Below, piece after piece: positions 534 to 59,711 of a stretch of DNA of 64,000 nt; the first letter of the stretch is position 1; each line of letters begins with the position of its first letter. The notes under the pieces were generated by a model that worked only from the letters and a program-made list of their open reading frames with translations, did not search any database and was not told the DNA's origin. Source of the DNA: Trichosphaerium sp. ATCC 40318 (taxonomy: Eukaryota > Protista > Tubulinea). The stretch spans positions 682,001 through 746,000 of the forward strand of contig JALMLS010000466.1 of the NCBI GenBank assembly GCA_038496445.1. The letters run 5' to 3'. The position numbers were made by a program, and so were the translations under genes.

Positions 534-3500
534 CTACGATGTTATATCATCAAGAAGTTTATCTAACTCTGCGTCAGTGACACTTCCTAAAGCAAAAAAT
601 TAGAGACAAAGGAACAGGATGTGAGAAAAAAAAATACGTACTTAAATCAGACATAGTTGATTTGGATAGCTGTCTACTATGTAATGCTGGTGCACGTTGA
701 TTACCACCAGTAGTTCTTGGTGGTTGCTGTGCTTGCTTTGGCTTATTTCCATCAGCACCTACGTGCACATACTTGATAGGTAAATCTAAACAAAAAAGCA
801 GCCGTTAATGCTCAACTCTGAAAAAACTCTGTTTTTTGAGTTTTCTAACGTACTAGGATCGATGTGAGCTTTTGGGACAATATAACGTTGTCTTCCTGAT
901 GGTCTAAACCCAGTTCCCAGATCTTTCATAAGTCTGTTTACGTAGTCACCAGATACATCAGAAGATGATTTCTCCCAGTCGTTTAATGGCTGTAAAGAAG
1001 TCAACAACAGTTTCAAGAGAAAATATACTTACCCGGCCTGGATTTTGTTGTTGTCGTGTAGGCTGACTTACAGTTCTTGGAGCTACAGGCACCGATACAG
1101 GTTCAGGATCCCGTTTCTCTTGAGTTGGCTACAACAAGGTCAAAAATCGACTTTCAAGAGTGAAAATGAAGCTTACTGGTGTCCATGCTGCAGTTGCCCA
1201 AGCTCCGCCTTTTGAAGATGTACGTGATTGAGGAGGTCCCTCAGTGCGTTGTGGTTGTTTTGTACCCGCATTTGCATATACAGAACCTTGACCACCTCCA
1301 ACATGCGCTGTACTTTGTTGACGAAACCTAGAACTCTCTTGTCGCCTTTTCTGTACCATTGCTTGGGCAGCGCTTACACTCACTTGTCGTGGTTGTACTT
1401 GCGATATTCTTTGAACCTGTGGCGCTGATGCTTGACGCATATGTGAGCTACGGTTGGTATTGGCACTTGGTCTGGAACCACCCAAAGAGCGTTGTGAAAT
1501 ATGACTTTGTGGCTTAATATAAGCTGCTTTTTGTCCTGTTGGTCTTCGTGATACTCTGGACATTCTTGTATTTGGTGCTGCTACACCCATATTGACAGAC
1601 GGATTTCTTTGATTTCGTACAACTGGCTGTGATGGCTCTAACGGCATAAAACCGTTTCCTGCTTTACCCGTGTTCACAGAAACGCCAAACTGTCCTTCAT
1701 TGTTTGTTTGTGCAGGAACATTAGTTTCTGTGTGATTATTATTGGCGCCTGAAGGTGAACCAAGGTCCATCATTAACTCGGCAAGCTCTAGTAAAAAGAG
1801 TGAGTAACGCCACGCCGTTATTGAAGTGTACATACCATCATTGAATGCGCTGACACCTGTCATTCCTGATCCAATACTACATGTAGAAAGTGGTGGTGAT
1901 TCTGGAACGAGTTCATCAATAAGCTCATCTATCTTATTAGTTGAAATACTTGCACGTGGATCAAGCGTGTTGAAATCCTGCGGAAGGAGTAAGCGTGCGA
2001 ACAACAACAAAATTGTTTTTGGGCAAGTAAATTAAAAACAAAATGCCTCTTTTTCGACTTACCTTGGGTTGCACATTCCTTGTAGATACTCTTGAATTAA
2101 ATGTATCTCTGCGGTTTATGTCGTTATTATTAATTGTTGTCGGAGGGCCAGTAAACGACGGTACAGTGGCCTCAGAGTTTGATCTTGAGTGCTCCACCTC
2201 TAATTCTCCCAATATAGAATTTAATTCATTACTTGTTACAGAGCAAGCTTAAAAAAACGATTAGACACTGATGATAAGCGAGGAAACCAAAAGAAAAAAA
2301 GCAAGAAAATGCGATGTAGCACGAACCAGAACCAACTGAGAATCTAGTTGATGTAAAATTAAAATCAACACCATAAAGGGTGTTACGAATAGACTCTCTT
2401 TCATCTCCTGGGTCAACACCCATCATTTTTTGTGTATTTATACGTTCTTTGCGAAGTTGGCTTCTACCTCCATTTAGCACTGATATTAGTGCCAAAACAT
2501 CATCATCAGAAGCTGTAGATCCTACAGAGGCTATAGATTGAGGTCGTGATGGGCGCTAATTTGAGATTAGCTGGTTACATTTCATTCAAAACAAATTTCA
2601 AAAGAAATTAAACTAAAAACAAGTACCTCCGACGAGAGCTCCGCTAATAGATCGCCAACCTCACCTACTAAATCAGATATTGCTTCTTCAGCTCTGCCCT
2701 TATTTTTAAGGTTAATAGAGGGCTTATACAGTTAAGTTTGATGTACCCTTGATCCTACAGTCATTTCCATTTCGCCCAAGTTACCACCAAAATCATTATC
2801 ATCAGGCTCAACTGATTTTGTACTCAGGGGTTCCACCTGAGAGAATGAACGCGTGTTTACATCATACGTCAATTCCAAATCGGATATTCTGTAAAGGAGG
2901 TAAGTTGTGGCTCTTTTTTCAATTCTTTTTTTTTTGCGAAGTAAGATCGTACTTGTCTAGGTTAGAACTAAACTCGTTCATTGGTACAGGTTGCGTAGAA
3001 GTCGAAATGAACGATGCAGGTTCTGGCTCAGGTTCCGGTTCATCTACAATATAGTCTGCGTAGTCAATCTCATCTGGGTCTTTATCATGAGATATCTCTT
3101 CGTTTTCGAGAGTTTCTAGCATGGCGTCCATTTCTAGTTGAAACGCTGATACAGACTCTTCCTCATCGTCTTCAACTACCGCATTAGGTGTACTTGCGAC
3201 AGGCTCTATTTTGATGTTATTTTAGGTTGGTACAATAAAATTTGTTTTTTCCGCTTGCAACTGCGTGGTGTGGTGTAGCACGGACGTTTTGTGAATGTTT
3301 GTGTCAAAGACGATTCCTCAATGTCGTTTAAAAGATCATCAAGAGCACTACCTAAATCATCTAACCAGGTTAGCATTGAGTATTCCGTTACACAAGGAAC
3401 GTACTGTTTTCTTGTGGTACATTGCGTAAACTGGGCGTTGCGCTCTTATCTCCACCAAATTCGGCCAAAATAGCACCTACATCGTTCAATAGCCCTTGGC

Positions 3501-23243: not shown

Positions 23244-24845
23244 ATGCGCACCGCTATTCTTCGTATAGTGGCTATAGTATTTATTGCATTGTCTATCATA
23301 GTATTTACATCCTTTGGTTTCGGTCTAAACAGCACAAACGAAGTTTTTGCTTTCTTTCAAATTGGAGCTACTCTACTGCTATTGAGGTATTGGCCAAGCA
23401 AGAATGAAAGTTGGGTATGGACAATACTAAAATTCGTTATTTTGGTTCTTGCTATTACTTTGGGCTACACTATCGCGTTTGCAGGGTCGTTCGCAACGGA
23501 CTCGAATGGTTTGGGTCGTAGCGTTGGAATCGTTTTTGGCATTTCAATAGGAATCGCCGTTATTTTGCTCGCTACAGTATATGCGCCTCACTACCGTATT
23601 CGTACCCGTTTCGAGGATCACACAAACTCATTAGGCTTATTTTGCCTGTCACTCGTTTTCCCCACTTTATACACCGCAATGTGGTTCCTCATAGTCAAGG
23701 TATGGCGTTTTCATAAGCAAAACAACTATTAACCCACCTAGGTACTGCCAATTGGAGATTTTGCACATCCAGCTTACGGATTTATTAACGTACAAAGTCT
23801 TGTGATGGTTTCATCGATTTTCGGGATTTCTGGCATCATATTCCTTGTTTCTTGGGCCGCTGGATTCGCAGTCACTGCCTTCACTACTAAAGACTCTAAA
23901 AAACTAAAATTAACGGTTATTGTGATGACTGTTGTCGTGCTACTTGTTGCTACGTACAGCTTATCTCAAACAATATCAGCGCAAAGACTATTCTACCAAT
24001 TACCTGTTGAAGTGTCTCCAGGTAGCCAACTCAAAGTCACGTGCTTAATAGGCGGTGGAGAATCAAAAACAGAAGAAGTACTTAAAGCTGATCCTGGTAT
24101 AGACTTGGTATTATGGAGTGAAGAGACAGGTTATTACAATGATGTCGATGAGTTAAAAAATTTACAAACAATCGCTAAACAATATGGATCTGTTATAGCA
24201 CCTACGTATTTTAATAGTACTCAGTCTAATAACATGGCTGCTCTTATTAGTGATAATGGCGATGTATTATTTACATACAAAAAGCGTCATCCTGTACCAG
24301 GCGTAGAAACATCAATCAAGAGAGGTCCGGGAAAGGTTCAGTCTGCTGATACTATTTTGGGAAAAATTGCTTTAGCAATTTGCTTTGACTTTAACTTTCC
24401 TGACTATATCGCTAAAGTATCACATGATACTGATATTTTTCTTCAACCTTCTCAAACATGGGGACCTATTGGTAAGTACCATGCAAAGGTAAACGCAATG
24501 AGAAGCGTAGAACAAGGATTTCTTTTGATAAGATGTTCGAGTTACGGATACTCTGGTGTATACAATCCTGATGGATCCTGGAGCGCTTTCACTCCTGATA
24601 AAGAGTCTGGTGCTTATACTTTTGTAGTGCCACGAAGATTTAATCGTGTATTCACTCTTTATTCTTATATTGGAGACACTTTTGGATGGATTACAGTTAT
24701 TTTTGCGTTTTTATACTTAGGAGGACTTGTTTTTGTTCCAAATTCTATTTTGAAGAAGCTTAGATATTGGACTATTCTTTCAAATACACGTGACCAGTAT
24801 GCAAATATCAATAGTGACAAGGACGAAGACTATGGAATGATATAA
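23244..24845 (+). CDS. Apolipoprotein N-acyltransferase (Lnt)-like membrane nitrilase-fold protein (1 intron)
   Basis: N-terminal transmembrane helices, PIGDFAHPAYG...IFGISGIIFLVSW, catalytic triad motifs LWSEE / YKKRHPVPG / ICFD, MRSVEQG, C-terminal TLYSYIGD plus a transmembrane helix. Confidence 0.85.
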
Positions 24846-37705: not shown

Positions 37706-38859
37706 CTACTCTTCGTCTTCCATTATTAACGAAATTGTACTAATATCACGTGGTGTTCCATCCTTGTCCCAAGCATTGTACGTTCCTTGCCATTCCCCAT
37801 CAACTTTAAATCCATGATAAGCAAGCTGACCATTATCATACCATTGTTTATATTCACCTTCATCATTTCCTTTATCGTTAACAGTAGTATGAAGATAAAG
37901 TTGCCCGTTAGAAAACCAATCCTTGTATACTCCTACAAATACACCCTTTTTCATAAAAGCATGAGTATCCACTTGACCATTCTCATGCCATGTTTTATAC
38001 TCTCCTTCTTCGAGACCATTTTCTTTAAAACTGTCTATTTCTAATTGACCATTTTCGAACCATTGCAAGAATTTTCCATGTTGCATTCCATTCTTCATAT
38101 CACACTTACATACCATAACTCCATTCTCATGCCATGATGTATGAACACCATGAGACATACCATCTTTTTTCTGACATTCAATATGAAGTTGACCACTAGG
38201 GTACCACTGAAGAAACTTACCACATTTCTTTCCGTCTACCATAAAACAGTGAACACATAACTTTCCGTTATCGTGCCACTGCTTGTACTCTCCACTATTT
38301 AGTCCATTTTTCTTTATCACACGTATTTCTAATACACCATTTTCGTGCCATTGTCTATACTCACCATGCATTTTACCTGCGATCATGAAGCCCTTTATTT
38401 CAAGTTGGCCGTTTTTATACCATTGCTTAAACACTCCGTTGTTAAGCCCGTCTTTCATGACGTTTAGCTTGATTAGCCGACCCTTTTTTGTCCATTCTAG
38501 CCATGTGCCACACTTACGTAGCATGGAATCGTATCGTGTCGATATAGCGGCGGTTTTTGACAGCGAGTGATATTTTGCGAAGGTTTCTGCATCGTAGCTC
38601 GAGATAAGGCATTGTAGCTCCTTCGGAAGATGTACTAAACGCGTTTCCACCGCCAATAGTGGTTTGTAGGCTAAGGTGTGTTAGTTCTACAAATAACAGC
38701 GTTTTTTTTTGCTAATAGTGTCGCAGACGACGTGATCGTGCTTAAATGGGTGTTTAATACGCCGTTTACGCCATACCAACTAATTGTAGAGTGTAAAAAG
38801 ATGATTTTGTTCCTAGAGCAACGTATCGTACGTTTTTTAGCATCAGTAACTTGGCTCAT
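37706..38859 (-). CDS. F-box-like + MORN-variant (MORN_2/YwqK-like) repeat protein
   Basis: Exon 1 MSQVTDAKK spliced via a gtacga...ctaac...ttag intron to PYKPLLAVETRLVHLPKELQCLISSY; about 11 repeats of ~24 aa, GxYKQWHENGQL. Confidence 0.85.
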
Positions 38860-54600: not shown

Positions 54601-55565
54601 ACAAGGTTGTGGAGCAGCTAGTGTTTCGAGAGATCCTGCAGAATATGTTGCTATAGCTTACAATGTATTTTATACACTAGTATGCGTTATCCTTGCTGCT
54701 GCTTACGCCACCTACGGTACACGTATCGTATTATTTATACATAAGAGTGGTAAGCTCGCTAAGGGTAAGGCGCAGCAAGCAGCGCGAAACAAGAAGATAC
54801 AAAAAGTACTTGAATTTTTTTTTTTTTTTCAATTCTAACAGTCCCTTTTCTAGATGTCAATCATCTCTGGTGTTTGTACAATCTGTTTGCTTGCACAAGC
54901 TGCATTTTTGTTATACACAGCGTTTGAGAGCCCTACATCTGTTATTGGTGTGGTTGTCTTTTTGCTTATCGTCGATTTGGTGCCAGCCTATGTATTCATT
55001 ACACTATTTAGGTATGTAATTTTTTTACTTGTTGTACTCTCTTTGTGCTAAGTGTTCTGTCTTTTTAAGGCCGACATCTCTCTTCTCTGATCGTAAACAA
55101 AAGAGAACAGAGATAACAAATACGCCAAGTACAAAGGGACGTGCTTCGTCAATAGGCACTGACCACAGACGGTCGTCAGTTGTGGCTCCAACTGCACAGA
55201 TACAGAGTGCGTACTTAATTTTGTTGCGCTCGCATTCTTTTTCTAACGTTAGAAAAAGAAGGAACGCCTCATACACCCAACCCAGAGCCGAGTGAGTCAT
55301 CGTCTTCTTCTGAAGAGTCTTCTGAAGAGTCATCACAATTGCCTGAAGTGAATGGAAATATTTCCTTGACAAAGCAAAGCATAGAGACTTCTGATGATGA
55401 GAATGAACCAAACAATTTGACGTCACCATTAGGTGGAGGTATTGTTATTAATGAGGACTTGTTCCGGTCTTCGAGCAGTGAAGACGAAACGACCGACGAC
55501 GAGGTACGTTAACCATGCATACTTTTACCTTGTTTTTTTTTGACATTTTTTTTTGCTTGTAGTGA
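48673..55565 (+). CDS. Large receptor-like protein: signal peptide, long Cys-rich ectodomain, TOM1/THH1-like multi-TM domain, Ser/Glu-rich tail
   Basis: Signal peptide MYRHAFNYYIVLCVGLLG; many Cys-rich exons; SEFPALMVFAIYSLVVIRWAEIFH and YATYGTRI as in TOM1/GPR137-like proteins; final intron lies directly before TGA. Confidence 0.75.
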
Positions 55566-55769
55566 GTCACTCCTACGTCGCCCTGTAAATTTTTATTGTA
55601 CATTGATAAACACAGGCAAATAAATTAATAAAAGAAAGATGCTTATATTGCTGATGATATTGTACTTGAGACTCATTTTCTGGTGATTGAAATTTCAAGT
55701 TGATCAAGAATGTTCTTGACTTGAACAAACTTTCTTTGGCACGATTTCAAACCGTTTATTTCGCGAACC

Positions 55770-56782
55770 ATGTTGAGACAGTCATTGCTTCGCTCTGCAC
55801 GTACAAATCGCAGGGTAACATGTAAAATACCTTCAAAGCGCTTTACTCCTACAAGAAAATTTACAACGGTTTCTGTACTGCGAAATCAAGCCGTTGAAGT
55901 CGATTTTCCTTTCGATATACCGCTAGGGGACGGAAATGATAATATTGCAGATGCACAGCAAACTGCAGCGCCAACCATACCTACTGGCGTCAATGGTACG
56001 CTCACGTTGTACAACTGCGCCTTACAACTATCTAGCTCCTAATGCGCCATTTTACGCAATATACAGACCCTTTTCAGGGTACGTCGCGTGTTTTAACGCT
56101 TGTAACAATCACTAGAGAGCGTATGAGTAAGGGAGCTTCATTTCAGTTCAAATTCACCAAAGGATGCGTATACCTTGCTGCAGCGAAACAAATGGTACAT
56201 TAAACAACCTTTTTCGAGTCTCTTTGAAATAAAAAAAACTGACTTTTCCAACTGAAAGCGAGAGAAACCACAACAAGTCTCACCAGGAACTCAAGTATTT
56301 GATTGGCAGAATAAGATTATGTTTAAATTGAGCACTACAGAAATGGGTGAAGTGTTAAACTTTCTACGAAAGAAACCAGTAGGTGAGTGAGACGGTGGAC
56401 GGATACGACTTGCAAAAAAAAAAGACTCTGATTTTAACTTGTTTTAGATGGCTTGAAAGTAAATATGACACATCAATTTAAGCTTTCACAGCAACAGACT
56501 ATATCCAGGCTACAAATGGTACCTGGAAAGGAAGGTGAGTTCACACCCTGGATTTTTTTTTGTGTTAAAAGTCAACGGTTTAAGTTTCCATTTTTTTGAC
56601 TTCTTTTTTGTTTAGGGAGTTATATGATCGGTATGTCACGTGCACCTTATGATCCAATGAATAGAAGTGTTGGTAACAACCCAGAGCAGAAGTATGTCTC
56701 ATTATTCTTTGATGCTAATGAAGCTACTTGTCTTCGAGAGTTTTTTGCAGAGTCTATAAAAAGATCCATGGGATTCTTGTAA
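55770..56782 (+). CDS. Mitochondrial Whirly/MRP-fold single-stranded nucleic-acid-binding protein (5 introns)
   Basis: Presequence MLRQSLLRSARTNRR; spliced core FYAIYRP...KGASFQFKFTKGCVYLAAAKQM...QVFDWQNKIMFKLSTTEMGEVL...VSLFFDANEATCLREFFAESIKRSMGFL*. Confidence 0.75.
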
Positions 56783-56982
56783 AATATAATCCTCTCCAAT
56801 TACAAGAGGCCCTATTTTTTTTTTTGAAAATAAAGGTTACACTATTAAAGTAAGTAACAAGCAACAAGTTGAGTTCAACTGAACCTACTGTTTTTTTTAG
56901 TGGTTGAAGAAAACATACAACAAAAGTTAGCAGCAGCTGATTTCTCTAACATCACAATTTTTTGTTTTCTTTTGTAATTTAT

Positions 56983-57760
56983 TTATTCGTCTACTTCTTC
57001 ATCGTTAATGTAATGACCTTGTTTTTGTACTTGACCATTCAGATGCCAGCGTGTGAAATCTCCTTCTCTTTTGTTGTTCTTGTACTTACACATTTCTTCA
57101 AGTTGTCCAGTTCTATACCAATACATGTGCTCTCCTTCTCTTTTATCATTAATGAAACGACACTTTGTCCTTAATTGACTATTCTCATACCACTCTTTTT
57201 GCTCTCCTTCTAGTTTACCATTGACATAGTTACATTGATAAAACATTATACCAGCTTTAGTCCAGAAGGTTAACACGCCATGCAGCTTACCATTTACACT
57301 TTGACTAGTTTCAATTAACTGACCATTCTCATGCCAAGACCTGAATTCTCCCTCCACTTTACCATTAATTATATAACACTGTGTAGATAACTGACCATTC
57401 TCATGCCAAGACTCGTATTTTCCTTTCATCCTACCTTTTACAAAATGACATGCACTAAGTAAAGGGCCTTTCTTGTTTTTTTCGTAATACCAACTCTTAG
57501 CCTCTCCGTGTTCTTTTCCATTTACAAAATAGCGCCGTGAAAGTACGGTTACTTTTCCATTGCTTATACAAACCGTTTTTTCTAAGGCACTATTGAACGA
57601 GTTGTAACAGCTGCCTTTTACAAAGTAGCGGCCATTTTACGAAAACGTATGGACTTAAATCTATTAAGTCGAGTGCAGTTCAAGTGGAAGTTCTAATAAA
57701 ACAACCTTGTTTCTTTGCTCATTTTTGTACTTCTTATTCAATTGTCGAGTAACCATTGAA
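56983..57760 (-). pseudogene. F-box/MORN gene copy with a frameshifted 5' part (possibly an assembly artefact)
   Basis: 3' part is nearly identical to 58415-59005; several indels upstream of ~57530 break the frame. Confidence 0.6.
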
Positions 57761-57851
57761 ACAAAAAACTCTGTTTTACGTCCAATTAGATAGTATAACA
57801 ATACTCACTAAATTAGTAGTTTTGGTTTTTTATGTGTAGGTTTTACTTGTG

Positions 57852-58285
57852 GAAGTGTTAAACTTTCTACGAAAGAAACTCTGATAGGTGAGTTTTCGTT
57901 TGGACGTCATACGGCAAAAAAAAATCCAGACTCTGATTTTCCTGTTTTAATGGCTTGAGGTATATGACACATCAATTTAAGTTTCACAGCAACGGACTAG
58001 TATCCAGGCTACTGGACCTGGAAAGGAAGGTGAGTTCACACCCTGGTTTTTTTTTGGTTAAAAGTCAACTTTTAAATTTCCATTTTTTTGACTTCTTTTT
58101 GTTTATATTAATGATAATATGTCACGTGTCCTTATTCCAATTTTTAGAAGTGAGGTATACCCACTATGTCTCATTATTCTTTGATGCTAATGAAGCTACT
58201 GTCTTCGAATTTTTTAGAGTCTATAAAAAGATCCATGGGATTCTTGAAAATATACCTCTCATTAAGAGTTTGTTTTTTTTTTAAA
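57852..58285 (+). pseudogene. Degenerate duplicate of the 3' half of the Whirly/MRP-like gene
   Basis: Remnants MTHQFK and YVSLFFDANEAT with many deletions relative to 56349-56782. Confidence 0.6.
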
Positions 58286-58414
58286 GTCACTATTAAAGTA
58301 AGTAACAAGCAACAAGTTGAGTTGAACTGAACCTACTGTATTTTTTAGTGGTTGATGAAAACATACAACAAAAGTTAGTGGCATCACAATTTTTTGTTTT
58401 CTTTTGTAATTTAT

Positions 58415-59201
58415 TTATTCGTCTACTTCTTCATCGTTAATGTAATGACCTTGTTTTTGTACTTGACCATTCAGATGCCAGCGTGTGAAATCTCCTTCTC
58501 TTTTGTTGTTCTTGTACTTACACATTTCTTCAAGTTGTCCAGTTCTATACCAATACATGTGCTCTCCTTCTCTTTTATCATTAATGAAACGACACTTTGT
58601 CCTTAATTGACTATTCTCATACCACTCTTTTTGCTCTCCTTCTAGTTTACCATTGACATAGTTACATTGATAAAACATTATACCAGCTTTAGTCCAGAAT
58701 GTTAACACGCCATGCAGCTTACCATTTACACTTTGACTAGTTTCAATTAACTGACCATTCTCATGCCAAGACCTGAATTCTCCCTCCACTTTACCATTAA
58801 TTATATAACACTCTGTAGATAACTGACCATTCTCATGCCAAGACTCGTATTTTCCTTTCATCCTACCTTTTACAAAATGACATGCACTAAGTAAAGGGCC
58901 TTTCTTGTTTTTTTCGTAATACCAACTCTTAGCCTCTCCGTGTTCTTTTCCATTTACAAAATAGGTTTCCGTGAAAGTACGGTTACTTTTCCATTGCTTA
59001 TGCAAACCGTGTTTTTCTAAGGCACTATTGAACCGAGTTGTAACAGCCGCTCTTTTACAAAGTAGCGGCCATTTTAAGAAAACGTATGGACTTAAATCTA
59101 TTAAGTCGAGGTGCAGTTCGAGTGGAAGTTCTAATAAACTACAACGCCCGTTTCTTTGCTCATTTTTGTACGTCTTATCCGTATTAGTACCAAGTAATCA
59201 T
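58415..59201 (-). CDS. F-box + MORN-variant repeat protein (intact copy, 1 intron)
   Basis: ATG ATT ACT TG, intron 59190-59139 (gtact...tgtag), then T gives MITCLLELPLELHLDLIDLSPYVFLKWPLLCKR (F-box), followed by ~8 GxxxSWHENGQL repeats. Confidence 0.85.
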
Positions 59202-59711
59202 TGTTATACAACTAACCTCTTGTTTTACGTCCATTTAGTGCTAGTATCAACAATACTCGTAAATTAACTAGCATTGGTTTCTGCGTTGATTTTTACTTGT
59301 TTCAAGCGTTGCTTGATAGCAATAGGTGCGCTAATATGGAGCGTTCTTTGCACTTCATCTCAGTCACAATATCACACACATAGGTTCAGTGGAATTGATC
59401 TCGGATAAACAGTTAGTACTATTATCGAGATCATTGGGGTTAGTACGGACAAGCACCGTTGCTGGGAATGAGATTAGTAAAATAGTTCGGACAATTTCTT
59501 CGGAATTTGTTAACAATGTGGTGGAAAGCATCCCGAACTTCTTGAAATTCTCATAACATTCCAACAAGGTTTATGCGCTGGGCATTTATTGGAAAACAGT
59601 CACTTTGTAACATGCAACAGTTTTGCTACAACTACCACGTCTCTTTTACTTTACACTTATTGTCGTCTTTTATTCCCTTCAACGATAAATTAACATCCTT
59701 TGCAAAGGCTG

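Follow-up and report, generated by a model that had tools for sequence, protein, structure and literature searches.

A divergent Whirly-family gene in the amoebozoan Trichosphaerium sp. ATCC 40318

To which protein family does a split gene on the plus strand of this Trichosphaerium sp. ATCC 40318 DNA belong, and where would its product act? A preliminary description of the 64-kb stretch analysed here (the window) took the gene for an undescribed mitochondrial factor that handles ssDNA or RNA and bridges the plant Whirly proteins and the kinetoplastid RNA matchmakers MRP1/2. Reviews from 2022 and 2024 still call Whirly proteins plant-specific, and dictyostelids are recorded as lacking the family in a survey of their transcription factors. 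MRP1/2 and the Whirlies, according to a 2020 review, have a common fold and no sequence homology.

Gene structure and expression

By reading the sequence and scripting a gene model, we assembled six exons at positions 55770-56782 (+), joined via five GT-AG introns. The spliced coding sequence is 726 nt long, ends with a TAA stop codon at 56780-56782 and encodes a protein of 241 aa. This agrees with the product of ~240 aa expected earlier from five such introns; as had also been noted, the gene is missing from the list of open reading frames, which holds fragments only. The introns measure 40, 37, 64, 65, and 81 nt, all run from GT to AG, and their donors are GTACG, GTACA, or GTGAGT. The window has a GC content of 37.8% and the introns are short; the published Trichosphaerium genome has a GC content of 37.69% and a mean intron length of 75 bp.

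Exon 1 (55770-55995) carries the start codon at 55770, the first after an in-frame stop. Residues 1-42 (55770-55895) form an N-terminus that resembles a presequence, and residues 43-75 a linker that is acidic and of low complexity. Intron 1 (55996-56035; 40 nt, GTACGC...CTAG, phase 1) is placed solely by the reading frame and its GT-AG borders; left unspliced, it leads to a frame 0 stop at 56040-56042. Exon 2 (56036-56078) holds Whirly strand β1 with the string YAIYRP, aligned to homologues, and intron 2 (56079-56115; 37 nt, GTACGT...CTAG, phase 2) falls into the β1-β2 loop of a homologue's model. Strands β2 and β3 are encoded by exon 3 (56116-56194), which is colinear with the homologue P0005 and with the family HMM. 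Intron 3 (56195-56258; 64 nt, phase 0) lies right behind the AAKQM codons, and its position and phase are matched by an orthologue on a genomic contig (L004) of another eukaryote. The Whirly core motif FDWQNKIMFKLSTTEMGEVL, together with strand β4 and helix α1, comes from exon 4 (56259-56382), which gives a Pfam Whirly match; intron 4 (56383-56447; 65 nt, GTGAGT...TTAG, phase 1) is located past that helix. Exon 5 (56448-56534) encodes strands β5 and β6, and beyond intron 5 (56535-56615; 81 nt, GTGAGT...TTAG, phase 1), exon 6 (56616-56782) supplies strands β7 and β8, the C-terminal helix α2, a G-F end motif and the stop codon. Its β7-β8 loop is nine residues longer than in the homologues, and the exon aligns to the C-terminal helix and closing GW/GF that plant and archaeal Whirlies have. 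All motifs quoted in the preliminary description could be located in the spliced protein, FDWQNKIMFKLSTTEMGEVL at residues 130-149, YAIYRP at 82-87, KGAS at 95-98, and the C-terminal stretch at 215-240.

The gene is expressed. A peptide from the transcriptome of Trichosphaerium sp. ATCC 40318 (P0008, MMETSP0405) is the same as exon 5 from MTHQF on, continues with identity into exon 6, and confirms intron 5 because it is identical over the exon 5/6 junction (...PGKE-G-SYMIG...). For introns 2-4, support comes from a colinear alignment with the homologue P0005, an uninterrupted transcript ORF. Direct transcript support is confined to intron 5, and introns 1-4 are putative. Contigs encoding P0008 were not found in the records, and the protein database searched yielded no full-length product of the gene; Whirly goes unmentioned in the Trichosphaerium genome paper, and to call the protein undescribed was fair. 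A pattern search located two hexamers resembling polyadenylation signals at 56829-56849 (+), AATAAA at 56829 and ATTAAA at 56844, both of which are consensus matches only and lie 47-62 nt past the stop codon.

A 1.4-kb tandem duplication, in which 56349-57828 was copied to 57852-59280 (88.9% identity over 1508 nt), holds a decayed 3' duplicate of the gene at 57845-58250 (+) that comprises the last part of exon 4 and what follows through exon 6. In this pseudogene fragment, introns 4 and 5 have lost their acceptor AGs, several indels shift the frame, and the stop codon is gone. It was first noticed as a weak tblastn match. No intact paralogue was found within the 64-kb window, the sole other copy being the truncated pseudogene, and neither the Rfam scan nor the tRNA scan gave a match in the window.

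Family membership and fold

Exon 4 alone (41 aa) matches the Pfam Whirly family PF08536 with 24.4 bits (E = 2.9e-5, cut-off 23), and its motif aligns to YDWSRKQVFSLSVTEIG of p24/PBF-2, WHY1, and WHY3. The Pfam scans covered the exon pieces, P0005, P0008, and the ORF of locus L003, and the full spliced protein was aligned by local scripts. Against an HMM of independent PF08536-annotated homologues, the spliced protein scored 59.6 bits, with residues 82-240 aligned to HMM positions 16-156 of 156 and exons 2-6 colinear; an archaea-only HMM gave 46.9 bits. The alignment with P0005 was also colinear, covering residues 80-240 with an E-value of 7e-23. The homologues themselves score with Pfam Whirly (27.7 bits for P0005 and 51.4 bits for the L003 ORF), and searches of the PDB with family profiles retrieved plant WHY1, WHY2, WHY3, and p24 at E-values of 1e-9 to 4e-6. 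The Whirly likeness proposed earlier from short motifs thus extends to profile matches, above the Pfam cut-off for exon 4 and with homologues over the whole domain. Judged by its sequence, the gene encodes a divergent Whirly-family (PF08536) protein, which is a genuine, if somewhat surprising, member of an established family.

When representative proteins were searched with exon 4, P0005 was the sole true relative. Five long proteins, each matched at several places (P0001-P0004 and P0006), were treated as spurious, and repetitive sequence was plain in P0001 and P0006, the two inspected. The homologue search returned only P0005 itself when started from P0005 alone, and alignment A3 added P0007 and P0008. 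MAFFT repeatedly misassigned exon 3, exon 5, or P0008 to the opposite half of the domain, as its β4-α halves are alike.

For the fold, we turned to an AlphaFold2 model of P0005 (residues 48-204; pLDDT 91.3, pTM 0.85), a homologue of ~33% identity, which has the topology ββββ-α-ββββ-α. Searched against the PDB with Foldseek, this model gave 23 matches with E < 1e-3, and all 23 were Whirly or MRP1/2 chains. It matched the plant Whirlies 1l3a, 4koo, 4kop, 4koq, and 3n1h with TM-scores of 0.70-0.74 and the MRP1/2 chains 2gid_A and 2gje_A with 0.70-0.76, and the top match was Trypanosoma brucei MRP1 (2gia_B; E = 1.5e-8, TM 0.68/0.72, 19% identity). Overall, the model fits MRP1/2 and plant Whirlies equally well (TM 0.67-0.76), and the fold likeness to both families that the preliminary description had suggested is borne out for the homologue. 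Pur-alpha reached TM-scores of 0.33-0.39 at E-values of about 1e-3. The window protein maps to every secondary-structure element of the model without internal gaps, its indels and introns being in loops. YAIYRP of exon 2 aligns to FAIYKP of P0005 and the archaeal homologues (strand E9-14 of the model), and the C-terminal amphipathic helix and G-F end are present. Mapped by this alignment, the β4-α-β4-α fold seen in the homologue's model would also be that of the window protein.

The likeness to MRP1 and MRP2

Is the likeness to MRP1/2 more than that of a shared fold? Pfam contains an MRP family model, and no match to it was found in the exon pieces and P0005 with a threshold of E ≤ 10, nor in the L003 ORF and P0008 with one of E ≤ 1. 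Profile searches of the PDB reached MRP1 (2gia_B) weakly, with E-values of 0.3 (A6), 0.0056 (A7), and 0.06 (archaea-only A9), and MRP2 chains were absent from all three. The MRP1 sequence signal lies about 20 bits below that of plant Whirlies. An archaeal Whirly used as a control gave the same MRP1-first Foldseek ranking. As archaeal controls give the same weak MRP1 signal and the same ranking, MRP-likeness is a general trait of compact Whirly domains and not particular to this protein. The proposed bridge between the two families was therefore not upheld, given PF08536 membership by sequence, no Pfam MRP match and a control that behaves alike; a particular tie to the MRP1/2 proteins of trypanosome RNA editing has little support.

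These data also bear on function. An MRP1/2-like RNA matchmaker would bind mitochondrial RNAs via basic β-sheet faces and anneal RNA during processing or editing, and the Foldseek ranking of T. brucei MRP1 at the top with MRP2 chains next, the profile match to MRP1 at E = 0.0056 and the basic mature part of the window protein (pI 9.8) would all suit such a protein. We nevertheless regard this role as quite unlikely, because the Pfam MRP match was not found in the exons, P0005, or the L003 ORF, MRP1 falls about 20 bits short of plant Whirlies, and the likeness is unspecific, with the archaeal control and the archaea-only profile giving like MRP1 matches. Moreover, MRP is a heterotetramer of two paralogues, yet the only second copy in the 64-kb window is the truncated pseudogene. 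No guide-RNA-directed editing is known from Amoebozoa.

Proposed role and known relatives

The first 42 residues of the window protein contain 11 K/R, 10 S/T, and no D/E, and residues 1-21 have an amphipathic moment of 0.55-0.69. Basic N-terminal extensions are also found in the eukaryotic homologues P0005 and the L004 gene and are absent in the archaeal proteins. The N-terminus looks like a mitochondrial presequence because it is an acid-free, Lys/Arg-rich extension without an archaeal counterpart, in agreement with the presequence named in the preliminary description. The protein is probably sent to mitochondria.

We consider a mitochondrial ssDNA-binding Whirly tetramer in mtDNA maintenance the most likely role of this expressed amoebozoan nuclear gene and hold it to be somewhat more probable than not. 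In the predicted layout, a presequence of ~40 residues and an acidic linker of ~35 residues precede a single Whirly domain of ~160 residues that reaches the C-terminus. The presequence would direct import into mitochondria, the sole DNA-bearing organelle of an amoebozoan. There, as in solved Whirlies, a tetramer would assemble through the C-terminal helices, and the edges of the β-sheets would bind single-stranded nucleic acid without sequence specificity. Like plant mitochondrial WHY2, the paradigm of mitochondrial ssDNA binding (PMC7549692, PMC2377264), it may coat ssDNA at replication, recombination, or repair intermediates. The KGKAAL motif is needed in land plants for ssDNA binding and higher-order (24-mer) assembly (PMC9070903); since it is absent here, plant-style 24-mers are not expected, and its absence also counts against the proposed role. 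A pointer to a DNA role comes from four Micrarchaeota loci (L003, L005, L006, and L007), in which a Whirly gene lies directly 3' of a DHH or DHH/DHHA1 (RecJ-like) gene on the same strand. The protein may instead, or also, act on RNA. Plant WHY1 is reported to bind RNA as well (PMC2532728), and because of this and because the fold is as similar to MRP1/2 as to Whirlies, the amoebal protein may prefer either ssDNA or RNA.

Plant Whirlies and Tetrahymena TIF1 are also known to act in the nucleus (PMC2377264, PMC9070903), and with these documented roles among its relatives, the amoebal protein could be a nuclear single-strand-binding factor at telomeres, replication origins, or promoters, in the manner of p24/PBF-2 and TIF1, or could be dually localised. 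The presequence-type composition of its N-terminus (11 K/R and no D/E in 42 residues), the acidic linker behind it and the like extension in two further eukaryotic homologues speak against this, and we consider it unlikely. A recent acquisition of the gene by lateral transfer, with an archaeon, bacterium, phage, or giant virus as the donor and no settled organellar role, seems improbable to us. It is true that Candidatus Micrarchaeota MAGs supplied the largest number of relatives, in a search seeded with an archaeal sequence, that archaeal P0009 shares 35% identity with the window protein and eukaryotic P0005 about 32-33%, and that Trichosphaerium is reported to carry many foreign genes, with 1581 gene models assigned a giant-virus origin in its genome paper. 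However, the gene has five spliceosomal introns, one of which matches the orthologue of another eukaryote in position and phase, and an N-terminal extension of eukaryote type; its identity to prokaryotic sequences is about 35% at most; and a scan of viral contigs revealed no relative. In the BFVD fold search, the sole giant-virus match was poor (Hyperionvirus, TM 0.29), and a phage "Whirly transcription factor" was found at a TM-score of 0.60. With this evidence against a recent transfer, any transfer would be ancient. Finally, the fragments in the ORF track and the decayed partial copy 1.1 kb downstream could suggest a non-functional locus, be it a pseudogene or a set of ORF fragments that line up by chance. 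That reading is hardly credible, as it is contradicted by the transcript peptide P0008, identical over a splice junction, and by the full Whirly domain, which aligns end to end with homologues; in addition, the spliced frame is intact, and the decay seen in the downstream copy is not seen in the gene.

With mtDNA maintenance as the favoured role, the gene is an incremental addition to a known family and brings no new mechanism. It extends the Whirly family to a plastid-less amoebozoan, where it probably serves the mitochondrion, and offers an entry point to the study of mtDNA maintenance in amoebozoans. The gene and the archaeal clade also provide intermediate sequences with which homology between MRP1/2 and Whirlies can be tested. 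On a far more speculative note, to which we give a low chance, the amoebal proteins (the window gene, P0005, and the L004 gene) might be remnants of an ancient eukaryote-wide mitochondrial Whirly lineage that was also the source of MRP1/MRP2, with the RecJ-linked DPANN Whirlies as its prokaryotic sister group. If this were true, the "plant-specific" Whirlies and the "kinetoplastid-specific" MRPs would mark the two extremes of a single family of organellar nucleic-acid chaperones.

Compared with known systems, the kinetoplastid proteins MRP1/MRP2 (gBP21/gBP25; PDB 2gia/2gid/2gje) have the same fold as the homologue's model, with TM-scores of 0.67-0.76, are likewise basic and mitochondrial (as predicted for the amoebal protein), and show the weak whole-domain profile match to MRP1 given above. 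They differ in that the amoebal protein has no Pfam MRP match, a sequence signal ~20 bits weaker than to Whirlies and no second intact paralogue within the 64-kb window. Tetrahymena TIF1 and Pur-alpha, Whirly-like or PC4-like, are single-strand binders of the same fold class (PMC2377264, PMC7549692), although Pur-alpha fits the homologue's model poorly. With the plant Whirlies (p24/PBF-2 = StWHY1; AtWHY1, AtWHY2, AtWHY3; StWhy2), the amoebal protein has PF08536 in common, with the cut-off passed, as well as the (Y/F)DW..K..F.LS..E.G core motif, the C-terminal helix ending in G-W/F and, by way of the homologue's model, the β4-α-β4-α fold; like plant mitochondrial WHY2, it has an N-terminal extension of organelle-targeting type. 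Identity is about 14-20% in structural alignments of the homologue's model. Unlike land-plant WHIRLY proteins, the spliced amoebal protein has no KGKAA string, its β1-β2 region reading YRPFSGERMSKGASF; the FHDP motif, kept in plants and archaea, is lost, and the β7-β8 loop is longer. The host is also a plastid-less amoebozoan, whereas the plant literature describes the family as plant-specific (PMC9070903).

Whirlies from MAGs of Micrarchaeota (DPANN archaea; P0009-P0036), annotated as hypothetical, are 35% identical to the window protein and have the FAIYKP, AAKQ, FDWQNK, and C-terminal motifs in a compact domain of ~150 aa. In contrast to the amoebal gene, they lack the N-terminal extension and introns, lie directly 3' of a DHH or DHH/DHHA1 (RecJ-like) gene, keep FHDP, and have a much higher Pfam Whirly score (51 bits). 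The protist homologues, P0005 (transcript contigs L001 and L002) and the L004 gene, were drawn from sequencing runs SRR6234155 and SRR26590653 and have the same arrangement of basic extension, linker, and Whirly domain, with about 32-33% identity over the whole domain. Their extensions are shorter and their other intron positions differ, yet the L004 gene has the phase-0 intron behind AAKQ(M) in common with the window gene.

Gene structure and transcript evidence

The preliminary description noted that the ORF track does not show this gene, and the mechanical ORF list indeed holds only fragments of it. Reading 55,300-57,300 in the three forward frames, we found that coding pieces switch frame at GT...AG boundaries. 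An explicit model on the + strand joins six exons (55770-55995, 56036-56078, 56116-56194, 56259-56382, 56448-56534 and 56616-56782) into a CDS of 726 nt, which encodes a 241-aa protein and ends with the stop TAA. The five GT-AG introns proposed earlier are borne out by this model, measuring 40, 37, 64, 65 and 81 nt with donors GTACGC, GTACGT, GTACAT, GTGAGT and GTGAGT and acceptor AG in all five, and every motif quoted earlier is found in the spliced protein. The introns are short and the window has a GC content of 37.8%; the Trichosphaerium draft genome is reported at 37.69% GC with a mean intron of 75 bp, in a paper that does not mention Whirly (PMC10521059). An upstream ORF of four codons (M-F-L-T-stop; 55710-55724, +) precedes the start codon by 60 nt, in the same frame.

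Expression and splicing of the Whirly gene are both shown. Searching a database with exon pieces as the seed yielded a 78-aa peptide (P0008) from transcriptome MMETSP0405 of the same organism, Trichosphaerium sp. ATCC 40318 (amoebozoan, taxid 498012). The peptide runs from MTHQF in exon 5 directly into exon 6 without a single mismatch, which confirms intron 5. Residues 80-240 align colinearly (33% identity, E 7e-23) with P0005, a protist homologue encoded by an uninterrupted 204-aa ORF on transcript-like contigs L001 and L002. An HMM built from independent homologues only matched residues 82-240 at HMM positions 16-156 of 156 with 59.6 bits, and an archaea-only HMM scored 46.9 bits. This colinear homology supports the predicted introns 2-4. 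L004, a genomic contig from another eukaryote (33% GC; Logan SRR26590653), carries an intron-bearing P0005 orthologue at 2396-3130, whose first intron, of phase 0 and directly after AAKQM, has the position and the phase of window intron 3, while its later introns differ from those of the window. Intron 1, in a non-conserved linker, is predicted purely from frame and GT-AG boundaries. A search covering exons 3-6 found no full-length product in a collection of 5.8 billion proteins.

Whirly fold and likeness to MRP1/MRP2

The window protein is a member of the Whirly family. Exon 4 alone (41 aa) scored 24.4 bits (E 2.9e-5) against Pfam Whirly PF08536, for which the cut-off is 23 bits, and aligns with the YDW..K..F.LS..E.G core of p24/PBF-2, WHY1 and WHY3. 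P0005 scored 27.7 bits against the same family, and an intronless relative on metagenome contig L003 scored 51.4 bits and matched AtWHY2 by plain phmmer at E 1.5e-5. Used as profiles, homologue alignments A6 and A7 recovered all six plant Whirly sequences of known structure, with E 4e-6 to 4e-4 for A6 and 1e-9 to 7e-9 for A7.

The fold itself was shown for the homologue: the AlphaFold2 model of P0005:48-204, computed from the 35-row alignment A7, has a pLDDT of 91.3 and a pTM of 0.85, with the order four strands, helix, four strands, helix. Mapping onto this model predicts the same fold for the window protein. Every structural element falls on ungapped window residues, the indels are confined to loops, with two residues between beta1 and beta2, a few following helix alpha-1 and nine between beta7 and beta8, and all five introns lie outside strands and helices.

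The preliminary description regarded the protein as a bridge between plant Whirly proteins and kinetoplastid MRP1/MRP2. The double resemblance is right at the level of fold, since a Foldseek search of the PDB with the P0005 model placed T. brucei MRP1 on top (2gia_B, E 1.5e-8, TM 0.68/0.72, 19% identity), followed by MRP2 chains and all plant Whirlies (TM 0.67-0.76). Together, MRP1/MRP2 and plant Whirly chains account for all 23 matches with E < 1e-3, and Pur-alpha follows at TM 0.33-0.39. Three tests argue against the idea of a special bridge. Pfam MRP gave no match at E <= 10 for the exon pieces and P0005, and none at E <= 1 for the L003 ORF. In PDB profile searches MRP1 appeared at E 0.3 (A6) and 0.0056 (A7), about 20 bits under the plant Whirlies, and MRP2 was absent from the matches with both profiles. 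Controls containing no amoebal sequence behaved alike: the archaea-only profile A9 matched MRP1 at E 0.06, and the AlphaFold2 model of archaeal protein P0009 (pLDDT 86.7) again had 2gia_B as its best match (E 6.8e-9), on a par with p24. The MRP likeness is therefore a property of compact Whirly domains in general.

As judged from the Whirly profiles, there may be a borderline sequence link to MRP1 (2gia_B, whole domain, E 0.0056-0.3 with A6, A7 and A9); a 2020 review describes Whirly and MRP as having a common fold without sequence homology (PMC7549692). It seems improbable that a eukaryote-wide mitochondrial Whirly lineage was ancestral to MRP1/2, and the Whirly gene has no demonstrated link to RNA editing.

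Relatives elsewhere and the local duplication

An alignment-seeded search returned some 28 proteins, 136-243 aa long, each with PF08536 and several from Candidatus Micrarchaeota MAGs. Scanning species-representative genomes gave four loci in Micrarchaeota and one in Lentisphaerae. The clade in these DPANN archaea (proteins P0009-P0036) is well conserved, about 150 aa long and annotated as hypothetical. At all four archaeal loci examined (L003:1531-1992, L005:2875-3444, L006:2980-3453 and L007:3028-3465), the Whirly gene comes immediately after a same-strand gene of the DHH or DHH/DHHA1 (RecJ-like) type, a neighbour that points to single-stranded DNA metabolism; we found no description of this clade with its DHH neighbour in the literature searched. 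The bacterial relative from Lentisphaerae (L009:2342-2800; MHBQ01000084.1, a MAG) has the exact FDWQNK motif and 27% identity to the archaeal query.

The viral contigs scanned yielded no relative. A BFVD fold search with the P0005 model matched phage protein A0A6J5NR37 ("Whirly transcription factor", uncultured Caudovirales phage; TM 0.60/0.66, 22% identity), so Whirly domains circulate in phages too; giant viruses gave only a poor match. The window protein shows 35% identity to archaeal P0009 and 32% to P0005. Recent lateral transfer of the gene is unlikely because of this low identity, the introns and the intron position held in common with L004.

The Whirly gene is convergent with a minus-strand MORN_2-repeat gene (56983-57429). 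A 1.4-kb tandem duplication copied 56349-57828 to 57852-59280 at 88.9% identity. As it starts inside exon 4, the copy at 57845-58250 (+), running from the end of exon 4 to exon 6, is a truncated 3' part of the gene. Both acceptor AGs and the stop are gone and several indels shift the frame; this copy is a pseudogene fragment, and no intact paralogue occurs within the 64-kb window. The duplication also includes a second MORN-repeat gene copy. The MORN_2-rich ORFs (Pfam PF07661) at 56983-57429 (-) and 37706-38656 (-) score 83 and 103 bits, and the window has at least three MORN_2 units, if the duplicated copy near 58,400-58,900 is included. An ORF unrelated to the Whirly gene, 23802-24845 (+), encodes a carbon-nitrogen hydrolase domain (PF00795, 42.7 bits).

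Proposed role and place in the family

Residues 1-42 contain 11 Lys/Arg, 10 Ser/Thr and no Asp/Glu, and the amphipathic moment is clear over the first 21; from there on to residue 79 the protein continues as an acidic linker of low complexity, which begins after residue 42. Basic N-terminal extensions are also present in P0005 and in the L004 gene, whereas archaeal homologues have only a few residues ahead of their first strand. Amoebozoans have no plastid. As the preliminary description held, this basic, acid-free and amphipathic N-terminus looks like a mitochondrial presequence, and mitochondrial localisation is what we infer from it. The imported protein would form a tetramer through its C-terminal helices, bind single-stranded nucleic acid without sequence specificity and act in mtDNA replication, recombination or repair, like plant mitochondrial WHY2 (PMC2377264, PMC7549692). 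It may also be an RNA chaperone, as the Whirly fold serves DNA and RNA functions alike.

The Whirly family is called plant-specific in plant reviews (PMC9070903, PMC11712025), and Whirly/PBF2 is one of the families that a survey of dictyostelids did not find (PMC6873476); Tetrahymena TIF1 has been cited as a distant homologue (PMC2377264). In land plants, the KGKAAL motif is required for ssDNA binding and 24-mer assembly; it is absent from the spliced window protein, and algal Whirly-like proteins likewise do without it (PMC9070903). With the Whirly gene described here, a known family gains a new and divergent member in a lineage where it was not expected; the gene does not represent a system of a new kind.
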